Assembly (NCBI GenBank): GCA_964057225.1
Contig: OZ059897.1
Coordinates: 14,756,001 to 14,820,000, forward strand
Length of the DNA: 64,000 nucleotides
Direction: 5' to 3'
DNA from: Auanema rhodensis
Taxonomy: Eukaryota > Animalia > Nematoda
Position 1 is the stretch's first letter. Each line of letters begins with the position of its first letter. Below the pieces are notes generated by a model, which was not told where the DNA came from, did no database searches, and worked only from the letters and a program-made list of their open reading frames with translations. Shown piece by piece: positions 34,501 to 38,847 of the stretch. A program made the translations under genes and the position numbers.

Positions 34501-35849
34501 AATATCAACCTTCCATCTTATTTTTCTTTCACTCTCTATGTATTATAATGGGTTTAAGTTGTTTCTCACAGTTTTCTCTGTATTCTTTTCCAATAGAAAT
34601 AAAACAAAAATGAGAAAATAACGAAAATGGATATTGATGGACCACCCCTTTCACATAATCGAAATATTTAAATTTCGACTGTTTTCTATTCACTATCCGT
34701 CATTCATTCTCTTCCTTTTCTTCTTTTTTTCGCTCTCATGGTGTCCTTTTTGCTCTGAATGTCTCTTCTCATACATGTAGAGATATACAGATATATGTGC
34801 ATGTTATATCAAACTTTTCTCGCTTCATATTTTTTCTTTTCATAGCCTGTCAATCATATGTTATATAACTATTCTTATCCCTTAAGTTCATGTAAATCTT
34901 AACCTAATATTTCTTTTATTGGTCATATAATTGACTTTATGAATATGAACATTCAAACAACTTTATACAATCATATTTTTTGTGGTCTTTTTGATAATTA
35001 CGGTATTAAAATTGCTAATCGAGTTTCTCCAGCTCTTATACAGAGCATCGTATCGACTTTTTCAAGCCGATTATAAGCTTTTGATAAAATTTGATGACGC
35101 TAAGACTAAGTAGTTATTGATTACCGTATCTTGTACCTATAACTAGCTTAAAACTATGAAATACTGTTGCAGATACCTTTATCTATTCTAAGTTCCAATA
35201 AATTATTTATATGTTACTTCTTCGTTTATTTCGTCATTTTTTAAATTAAAATTATATATATTTCAGTATAAATACAGAAGAATAATGTACAACGTCTTAA
35301 TCATCTAGAAAAACGTAATAAGTGTTTATAACTAGATAGAAGAAAAACGGCTAATAAGGTATAGTTAAATATTATAATGTTTTTCTAATATTAATCTACA
35401 TGCTTAAATTATTTTTTCGAATGTATGAGTAGACACTTATCAAACATTCATCATTTCAAAGTATTTAAGACAATCAAGAGTACAACTTGATATAGATACA
35501 GTGCCTGCTCATTCATCATCTGTGACCCACCATATGCTGTTTTCGATCTGTGGAGCTGAGAAAGAGATCTTATCCTTCAACAGACTTTGCCATTGGCTTT
35601 TCTATCCACTTTCAAACTGACCATAAAAGGACTACTATATATTACAATGCGTTTATGCATAAGCTATTATATCACGCATAATCCCAAACTTTAATATATA
35701 ATATATAGTTTTATCATATTTGATTTTTTTAAAAGTTTTCCAACCACCCTTGAACTCATATTTTCATTCTTACCTATACAGTAAAAAATAATTTTCTTCC
35801 ATTTCTATTAAATATTAAAACAAAGTTTCAGTACTTTCCCCCCTAAAAA

Positions 35850-38847
35850 ATGGATCGGGGGCGGCTACCTGATGAAGAAGATGCTGATCTTTACAGTGGT
35901 CCTGATGGTGGGCGAGGTCCAGGCTATATGCCAGCTGGACCATCAGAAAGATGGTTAGACGGTATCAAGGTAATATTTTAAAATAATTAAATTCTTTTGA
36001 AAAAGAATTTAATATTTGCCTTTAATAATGTTTGTTGTTTAGTATCGAGTAGGTGACTGTGTTCAGTATCGAGGAGAAGCTTGTAGGCAATTTCTATCTG
36101 GAAGGATGATAATGATGACAAGTGAAAGCCGTGAAGACATGTATGACATTGGTAAGATTAAAAGATGGAACTGAGGATTATCATAAATAAATATTTTAAG
36201 ATCGTAACTTACGTGCTGCCACTATGTTTATTGACAGTTCAGCTTCTATATCCCAACAATGCCGACAGATTTCACAAGCTGTTGCTTGTTTCCATATGTA
36301 TAAGGTTTGTTTTCTTCTAAAAATAATGAAATTAAATAAGAATTAATCCAATTGTTCACAACAGAACAACCGTTCAATGCTTATTTTCAACTAAAAATAA
36401 AAAGTTTATGCTAATTTTGGCGTCATTCCAGGTTTGCAACAACAGTTCTGCTCCAATCAAACAACCTTTAGCTATTTGTAAAAAAGATTGTGAACTTATT
36501 CAGGTAATTTATATAATTATATTTAATTTATTATAATTAATTATTTTAGAAAGAAATCTGTCCTTCTGAACTTGCTTTAGCAGCAGAGCATGATCTTGTC
36601 GGTGATGGTCCCAAAGCCTTATTCCCTTCTTGTCCAACACTTCCTATATCAAATAATTGCATTCCAATCATCGATGCTCAAAGATCTCAAGTAAGTTTTC
36701 GTATAATTTCGCAATTCTTGTTTATTTTTGTTTATAAATAGTGATATTGATTTTTTATTTTTGTATTTTAGATGTCTACATCATCTGAAACCCCACGTGG
36801 TCATTTGACACATTGGTGTTATGTTAATACTGGAGTTAAGTATGAAGGTGCTGTTTCAACAACTATGACAGGAAAAACATGTCTGGATTGGTCGGAAAGC
36901 ACATCAAGGTAGTTTTTCCCTTTATGCTTCCTCTTATATTTAATTTTTTTTGTAGAGAATTCAACATTGATAGATATCCTGAACTCCGATATTCCAAAAA
37001 CTACTGTCGAAATCCTGGTGGTAAGAAGACACGTCCTTGGTGTTTCTCTCAGCCACTTGGACAGGAAGAGTATTGTGATGTAAGCTTTAATTCAATTTTT
37101 TTAAAATTTACTTTTGATTTTTCAGGTGAAGCAATGTCCAAAGGAAATGTATCCTCATTTAGCTGAGTCTCCCAGAGATAACTCTCCATCAGCTTCTGAT
37201 ACGCTTTCAAACATGTGGGATAACATGTCTTCACAGTGGCAACTTGCTGTTGTTGGAGGTGGTGTGTTCCTCTTCTTACTTCTGATTCTGTTACTCTGCT
37301 GTGCTTGTTGTTGTCGAAGCAAAAAAAAGAATAAAGGAAGGCATATGGGTGGTGGACATCAGAATCATCACATGTCTGCTCCACCAAGTATTGTTAATAG
37401 TGCTGGAAACTCGACATACTATCGGAAACTCAATGGAACTTCTACTCCCATATTGGGAAGAGGAGGTGCTGGACCAATGGAAATGACTTCGCTTCTTCCC
37501 GGAAACCAACTTGGAATACCCCCACCATATGGAGATCCTCCATTTCGAGCACCACCTGAGATTCCAGTTCAAGAACCCTATCATATTCTAGAGATCCCTA
37601 GTAGTCAAGTAAGAATATCCAGATATTCCCATTAAGCTGATTGTCCCTTTATAGTTGAAAGTTTGTGATTTGGTTGGAGAAGGCCAATTTGGTATCGTTC
37701 ACACTGGATTATGGACTGGCGGACTGATTAGCGGAGAACCTCTGCAAGTTGCTATTAAAACTTGTCGACCTGATGCCACAAATGCGGAAAAAGCTAGTCT
37801 CGAAGAGGAAGTTAGAACTGTCGCTTCCTTTGATCATCCACATGTTATTCGATTACTAGGTATGCAATCCTTTAACCTTTAATTATGAGAAGTTATTGCT
37901 TTTCAGGCGTTTGTTATATGGATGGAGGAAGACTATCAGCTGTATTCGAGTATATGGTTCATGGCGATCTTCATGATTTCCTTCGACTTCGTGCTCCAGC
38001 TTCTCTAGAAGACATTGATAGAATTAATGGCGATAGTGATGATTTCATGAGAATCGCTACACAAATTGCATATGGAATGGAATATCTGTCGTCGATGAAT
38101 TATGTTCATCGTGATTTGGCTACCAGAAACTGTCTTGTTGGTGATAGTCGTGTTATCAAGATAGCAGATTTTGGCCTAATGAGAGCTTGTTATGACAACG
38201 ATTACTACAAGGTATGGTGATTTCTGATCATTTCGGATGTTGATTTTCAATTTTTCAGATGTTACATCGCTCATGGATGCCTGTTAGATGGATGTCAAAG
38301 GAAGCTTTGGAACAAGGCCGGTTTAGCCAAGCTTCAGATGTGTGGTCGTTTGGTGTAACTCTTTGGGAGATTTGGAGTTATGGTCGCCAACCCTACGAAG
38401 GAGCTACAAATCAACAAGTGAGTTCTCATAACATCTTGAAACTGTGATACTAATGATTGGCATTTATAGGTTATTGAACTGATTGCTGGACGACATCTGT
38501 TGGAATGTCCTCATGGATGTCCGACGAATATTTACAGTTTAATGGTTGAATGTTGGCACGAGCATCCGGAACGGCGTCCAACTTTCTCGGAAATTCACAG
38601 TAGATTGCAGTCTTGGTCTCTAGCCAGTCCCAGTCATTCAATTCTTCACCCACAAAAAAATTCGAACAGTAGCCAAAGTGGTTCAAGTCTTTCTGGCGCA
38701 GGCCGCGGAGGACTTCCCCAGAAGCCATTGGCCACAATGACCAGAGCCGCTTACCCACCCCGGGGAGGTCGAAGGACAGAAGATGCCAGTCCCTTGATGG
38801 GAAGAGAAGCTAATTATGCATATAGTGAGGACGGTGATTCTTATTAG
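35850..38847 (+). CDS. cam-1: Second ROR/CAM-1 gene lacking the Ig domain (CRD - kringle - TM - kinase)
   Basis: TTTCAG acceptor at 35826-35831, in-frame TAA at 35844-35846, then ATG at 35850 ([25 protein letters not shown]). All downstream exons, splice sites and the stop are intact. Confidence 0.85.

Follow-up and report, generated by a model that had tools for sequence, protein, structure and literature searches.

In a 64,000-nucleotide (nt) stretch of the Auanema rhodensis genome (assembly GCA_964057225.1, contig OZ059897.1, positions 14,756,001 to 14,820,000 of the forward strand; hereafter the window, in whose numbering all coordinates are given unless stated otherwise), a complete gene for the ROR-type receptor kinase CAM-1 (copy 1) is followed on the same strand by a second intact gene (copy 2) that encodes only the short, immunoglobulin (Ig)-less form of this protein. 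In nematodes, CAM-1/ROR serves as a central Wnt receptor for neuronal migration, polarity, and synapse biology. The pair probably originated in an old partial duplication of cam-1 that gave the Ig-less isoform a gene of its own, with gene conversion keeping the two copies nearly identical and the isoforms split between them. The window has a GC content of ~33%, and its introns are 44–130 nt long with TTTCAG-type acceptors.

The copy 2 coding region (35850–38847, + strand) consists of 12 exons, at 35850–35969, 36043–36151, 36201–36304, 36432–36503, 36550–36690, 36772–36908, 36956–37079, 37126–37608, 37655–37859, 37907–38211, 38259–38417, and 38470–38847. An unbroken open reading frame (ORF) of 778 codons extends from the ATG at 35850–35852 to the TAG at 38845–38847, with GT..AG at all intron borders, and encodes a protein of 778 amino acids (aa) with a CRD, a Kringle domain, a transmembrane (TM) segment, a Tyr kinase domain, and a Ser-rich tail. 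Domain and homology searches were run on single exons. The CRD exon peptides (36043–36690) contain 10 Cys residues, as in a Frizzled-type CRD, and show 71–89% identity to C. elegans and Haemonchus CAM-1 in the first two exons and 46–62% in the rest. No match to Pfam Fz was obtained with the copy 2 CRD pieces, which as single exons are too short to reach the profile. The Kringle domain (PF00051) is split over two exons that score 28.2 bits (E = 2.4e-6; profile positions 1–29) and 34.2 bits (E = 3.3e-8; positions 37–75), and its six cysteines are retained. The 37126–37608 exon encodes a TM helix and, after it, a basic cluster. Four exons together cover positions 4–258 of the Pfam PK_Tyr_Ser-Thr profile, and the kinase motifs GEGQFG, VAIK, HRD, and DFG are present. 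Among 1.84 billion representative proteins, the best match of exon 8 was P0001 (E = 2e-38), which its sources name C. elegans CAM-1. The CAM-1 protein encoded here is 69% identical to the clade V orthologues of Haemonchus and C. auriculariae and 65% identical to that of C. elegans; the protein collections contained nothing closer than 69% identity.

Copy 1 comprises the same 12 exons preceded by four others and encodes a CAM-1a-like protein of ~934 aa. Its first exon, e1 (17098–17177, + strand), is followed by a GTAAGT donor and is 96% identical by tblastn to residues 1–27 of the Haemonchus orthologue. The other exons found only in copy 1 (24311–24785, + strand) are e2 (24311–24445), e3 (24492–24660), which carries the Ig domain (Pfam I-set at 24493–24660, E = 2.9e-10), and e4 (24705–24785), an acidic linker ending in EEYEDYE. 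The introns that separate e2, e3, e4, and e5 are 46, 44, and 48 nt long.

Several features of the N-terminal half of nematode CAM-1 were also apparent in these comparisons. The acidic first exon is strongly conserved, as the match to Haemonchus illustrates. None of the nematode CAM-1 N-termini, including those of C. elegans (MSPRPEDDDLVIEPADDEG...) and copy 1, has a hydrophobic signal peptide. The sequence does not reveal how the ectodomain is translocated. The linker between the Ig domain and the CRD (24705–24880 and its orthologous regions) is acidic, rich in Tyr, and conserved across nematodes, and resembles a tyrosine-sulfation-type motif; copy 2 retains just the second half of it. Part of the first coding exon of copy 2, when read in the +1 frame (35872–35958; 24859–24945 in copy 1), resembles a signal peptide, and the copy 2 version is the more hydrophobic of the two. 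We rejected this frame as a source of a signal peptide: it ends at a TAG (35956–35958) before the donor at 35969 that is used in RNA and cannot join the CRD. The resemblance is probably coincidental, if curious for a receptor with no signal peptide.

A self-BLAST of the window returned one repeat, in which 24837–28503 and 35850–39515 align on the same strand with 98.9% identity over 3671 nt. In copy 1 (+ strand), the repeat extends from the ATG of the MDRGRL exon (e5, which begins at 24834) to the stop at 27834 and on through the 3′ untranslated region (UTR). These are its only two copies in the genome (a 181-Mb, 112-contig assembly in which the window is part of contig C5). The DNA between the copies (28504–35849, 7346 nt) is unique sequence. 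Its portion upstream of the first copy 2 splice acceptor, at 28504–35260, lacks Ig relics, is not homologous to either the introns or the flanks of copy 1, and presumably contains the promoter of copy 2. When the flanks, intron 1, and promoter were compared with this spacer by sensitive blastn, no homology beyond the repeat appeared other than AT-rich chance matches.

Independent DNA data agree with this arrangement. In run X4, collected in 2019 for a different study, the contig corresponding to 35920–39515 has a depth of 93.8 compared to 47 in the flanks, and the spacer has single-copy depth. One X4 contig of 7476 nt leads from the end of the repeat (equivalent to 28474–28503) through the spacer to the start of the repeat (35920–35949); its length is exactly that of 28474–35949, with 30 nt of the repeat at each end. 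Another X4 contig exits the end of the repeat into the downstream flank. Run X3, which is labelled as another organism, likewise has doubled depth over the repeat and a contig that crosses the 5′ junction. These depths and bridging contigs yield an assembly graph that reads upstream, repeat, spacer, repeat, downstream, with the repeat traversed twice. The duplication is genuine and not an assembly artefact. A preliminary description of this locus, made from the sequence alone, had called a second kinase-encoding unit that long genomic reads might have reduced to one; the doubled depth and the spacer-bridging contig establish that both units are real.

The 39 differences between the copies are distributed very unevenly (clustering P ~ 3e-25), with 20 falling within 64 nt at the 5′ end (35856–35919, + strand; 31% divergence) and the other 19 spread across the 3.6 kb of exons, introns, and 3′ UTR that follow (35920–39515, + strand). 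Substitutions were counted by the Nei-Gojobori method as the proportions of synonymous (pS) and nonsynonymous (pN) differences. Codons 1–15 show pS of 0.83 and pN of 0 (P ~ 5e-6), with eight synonymous changes and 15 identical amino acids. In codons 16–24, where pS is 0.77 and pN is 0.31, copy 1 reads RVPDSAGGA and keeps the RVPD.A.G motif of all orthologues, and copy 2 reads SGPDGGRGP. Codons 25–778 have six synonymous and no nonsynonymous differences (pS 0.012, pN 0; P ~ 1e-4), and noncoding divergence in this tract is 0.98%. Over the first 45 nt, eight positions distinguish the two copies, and either copy differs from C. elegans at nine and from Dictyocaulus at 9–12. Homogenisation extends to 39515, near the 3′ end of the mRNA as indicated by an AATGAA at 39501–39506 and by RNA contigs that stop at 39497–39507.

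Since the silent sites of the 5′ patch are saturated and its peptide is unchanged, copy 2 would be an old duplicate under selection. Since the sequence from codon 25 to the 3′ UTR is nearly identical, introns included, it would also have been homogenised recently by gene conversion; the pair shows the abrupt switch between a near-identical tract, noncoding positions among them, and an old, diverged one by which conversion is recognised. All six coding changes that have accumulated since homogenisation are silent, indicating that neither copy is decaying. Together, the substitution patterns point to purifying selection on both copies.

Transcription of copy 2 was assessed in RNA contigs from libraries X10 and X12; such contigs are uninformative on the strand, ends, and abundance of transcripts. 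Each of the 11 coding introns of copy 2 is present in them as a GT..AG joint. Contigs from both libraries also carry a joint at 35356/8 to 35830/2 that links 35358 to 35832, with 92–96 letters upstream of the joint and at least as many downstream, and thereby place a noncoding leader exon of 92 nt (35267–35358), preceded by a TTTCAG acceptor (35261–35266), upstream of a 473-nt GT..AG intron (35359–35831). The last 18 nt of the 5′ UTR (35832–35849) adjoin the ATG; all of these elements are on the + strand. The contig across the leader joint spans the copy-2-specific patch at ≥99% identity. Copy 2 is a transcribed, spliced gene with its own 5′ end. The TTTCAG at 35826–35831 that the preliminary description had assigned to copy 2 is indeed used in RNA, and transcripts with the copy 2 5′ sequence, for which it had proposed a search, exist. 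Its expectation of a spliced leader (SL)-capped mRNA starting at 35832 was not borne out, as RNA joins this position in cis to the leader exon. The leader exon contains an upstream ORF (uORF) of seven codons (35285–35308).

The RNA contigs begin at the acceptor preceding 35267, which is how an SL1 trans-spliced 5′ end looks in a k-mer assembly; the leader exon is probably trans-spliced to SL1 at this point. Canonical SL1 genes are present in the genome. The main RNA contig starts at exactly 35920, the first base past the last difference of the 5′ patch, as expected for an assembly break if both 5′ variants are present in RNA. It carries the copy 2 letter at six of six exonic differences and at a 3′ UTR indel. 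Judged by contig depth (25 of 39 and 12 of 28), copy 2 would contribute a large share of the message, but depth is a poor measure of this and we do not rely on it. In X10 only, a third contig of low depth lies inside the leader intron (35491–35689) and could represent unspliced precursor or an alternative leader exon. The SL1 RNA genes number at least 51 and lie in same-strand arrays on contig C3 (6741531–7099372 of that contig), spaced at multiples of 252 nt; their leader is the canonical GGTTTAATTACCCAAGTTTGAG, and their Rfam SL1 scores of 54–62 bits are under the family gathering score of 75.

An in-frame TAA at 35844–35846 lies upstream of the copy 2 ATG. Because of this stop and because the leader exon is noncoding, copy 2 cannot be read through from copy 1, and since nothing upstream can enter the main frame past the TAA, translation must begin at MDRGRL. 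Copy 2 has no Ig exons: tblastn of e1–e4 of copy 1 against the spacer gave nothing at E < 0.7, and RNA shows just the noncoding leader. Copy 2 is a truncated ROR derivative, equivalent to isoform c, rather than a ROR gene of full architecture. On both points the preliminary description proved right, having placed the start of a second intact ROR gene at the MDRGRL exon, without exon 1 and the Ig exons, and having argued that the TAA prevents copy 2 from serving as a spliced-in 3′ half of copy 1; the ORF is intact, and its sole possible product is Ig-less.

The short form has a counterpart in C. elegans, where a single gene makes cam-1a, b, and c and the cam-1c isoform lacks exons 1–4 (PMC2920835), in agreement with the background given in the preliminary description, that one gene there gives both long and Ig-less forms. 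Copy 2 is a gene for form c only. The Met immediately before DRGRLP is conserved in orthologues of clades III, IV, and V, as is the Met of MDG..RPYIRL at which form b starts. From the C. elegans isoforms and these conserved Met residues, we infer that the ancestral gene of the lineage was single and made both forms. C. elegans, Diploscapter pachys, and Dictyocaulus viviparus have one cam-1 gene each, and in all three the intron between the last Ig exon (e3) and the linker exon (e4) measures 4.2–5.7 kb, compared to 44 nt in copy 1. With this 44-nt intron and neighbours of 46 and 48 nt, copy 1 has no room for an internal promoter. The short intron fits a duplication-degeneration-complementation scheme in which the long forms would have stayed with copy 1 and the short form would have moved to copy 2. 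We found no conserved noncoding elements shared by the spacer and the large intron of the other species, as is expected at such distance.

Two annotated models initially resembled Ig-less genes in other species and were rejected. The D. pachys model of 774 aa starts at MDRGRL, but its Ig exons lie 4–5 kb upstream in the same locus (L003, 4981–5624 and 9787–10117), and the annotation is truncated. For the 815-aa D. viviparus model (L005, 4044–5225 and 10001–19047), the Ig exons had been called as a separate 143-aa gene, which is a split annotation. Each locus contains one gene across a 4–6-kb intron. A literature search for the function of cam-1c, or for reports of a comparable cam-1/ROR duplicate in nematodes, yielded nothing beyond PMC2920835, the one paper in the searched library that treats cam-1c as an isoform.

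Overall, these data suggest the following course of events. An old partial duplication of cam-1 would have produced a separate downstream gene of the isoform c type, with CRD, Kringle, TM, and kinase. The new gene would have acquired its own upstream region and the 92-nt leader, putatively trans-spliced to SL1 at 35267 and spliced in cis, as RNA shows, to the acceptor at 35831. Gene conversion, recurring between about codon 25 and the poly(A) region, would hold copy 2 ~99.5% identical to its parent, and the first 24 codons, which appear to escape conversion, would preserve a record of how old the duplication is. In this account, both genes are transcribed and under purifying selection, with the parent keeping the long, Ig-bearing forms. 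The parent would also have lost the large intron ahead of the linker exon and, since copy 1 lacks this intron, copy 2 is probably now the main or sole source of the short form. A more complete version of this history, which we offer tentatively as somewhat short of an even chance, is a full split of isoforms once made from nested promoters. Here, the parent would have discarded the intron in which the internal promoter lay, and the Ig-less form, which lacks a signal peptide and for which no function is known even in C. elegans, would have been selected as a gene of its own with a diverging N-terminus and a more abundant transcript, while conversion stops the 754 shared codons from diverging.

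Several observations weigh against an old, converted duplicate with a protein product. The signal of age comes from only 72 nt. The 3′ edge of homology at 28503/39515 is abrupt, passing from 100% identity to none, which also fits recent copying. X10 and X12 were only guessed to be RNA by their index, although their spliced joints show that they contain RNA, and their contigs, the only form in which these libraries were searched, showed no SL letters on the leader exon. The copy 2 product lacks an N-terminal signal peptide, as its first 40 residues are not hydrophobic, and the route of its CRD to the surface is unexplained. The abrupt edge, together with introns and a 3′ UTR that are 99% identical and the fact that no relative is known to share the gene pair, would be accounted for by a recent segmental duplication with ~1% neutral divergence, in which copy 2 is a young and mostly redundant partial copy whose 5′ 70 nt were replaced from a diverged source or are atypical. 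The 5′ patch, however, is homologous coding sequence, in which eight synonymous changes leave 15 amino acids identical, no third genomic copy exists that could have donated it, and copy 2 lies between unrelated flanks and has a spliced leader exon to itself. We consider a recent copy unlikely, and leave it some weight because the 3′ edge is abrupt and the old patch small.

A still less probable alternative is that copy 2 is transcribed without making a useful protein, its mRNA being noise or regulatory. The uORF in the leader, the nonhydrophobic N-terminus, and the departure of codons 16–24 from a motif found in all orthologues would be consistent with this, but the 778-codon ORF is intact over 12 exons, all 14 synonymous-type differences outside codons 16–24 leave the protein unchanged, and VAIK, HRD, DFG, the 10 CRD cysteines, and the six Kringle cysteines are kept. 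The lack of a classical signal peptide, moreover, is shared by C. elegans CAM-1 (P0001) and other nematode CAM-1 models. Finally, a difference of 0.5% over most of the length is within the range of heterozygosity and could have suggested two haplotypes laid in series by the assembler. This is highly improbable given that the twofold X4 depth covers exactly 35920–39515, that the spacer is single copy with linking contigs at both repeat exits, that the copy-specific 5′ patch is too divergent to be allelic, and that spliced RNA specific to copy 2 exists.

Downstream of copy 2, at 41530–42640 on the + strand, lies a small multi-exon gene that encodes several hydrophobic segments; its protein begins MLKSALSAKNMDTVSTKTDEDKLWQADEK.

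The role of the short, Ig-less CAM-1 isoform is essentially unstudied, and its presence here as a separate, selected, and expressed gene argues for a function of its own. The locus offers a system in which a knockout or tag could be aimed at the long or the short form alone, with no need for isoform-specific tricks, and if the full split is true, it would provide a natural isoform-specific allele pair for the separate study of CAM-1C function. It is also a compact, well-bounded instance of a gene and its partial duplicate evolving in concert, with 24 unconverted codons as a built-in record of age.

Copy 2 corresponds closely to isoform c of C. elegans cam-1 (PMC2920835), with the same extent and Met start, no exons 1–4, and the CRD, Kringle, TM, and kinase retained, at 65% identity to C. 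elegans CAM-1 across exons. Unlike cam-1c, it is a separate gene that has upstream DNA and a leader exon to itself and lies 7.3 kb downstream of a complete cam-1. Two phenomena already established elsewhere bear on the pair: subfunctionalisation, in which duplicates divide alternative isoforms between them (reviewed in PMC5306129 and studied in PMC4494069), and the concerted evolution of paralogues. As in the former, a multi-isoform ancestor would have given rise to a duplicate limited to one form; here, however, the duplicate is partial and, instead of diverging, is kept nearly identical by probable conversion, and the parent appears, rather than is seen, to have lost the short form. The abrupt passage from a homogenised tract that includes introns to an old, diverged one recalls concerted evolution, although here homogenisation affects a receptor kinase gene, in which it extends from codon 25 as far as the poly(A) region and leaves only the first 24 codons unconverted. 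Vertebrates, with ROR1 and ROR2, likewise have two ROR genes per genome, but both of these have the full Ig-CRD-Kringle-TM-kinase architecture, originated by whole-genome duplication, and are well diverged, whereas the pair described here is local, asymmetric, and nearly identical. The kind of event is already known; what is new is a cam-1/ROR duplicate that encodes only the short form, a natural separation of isoforms.

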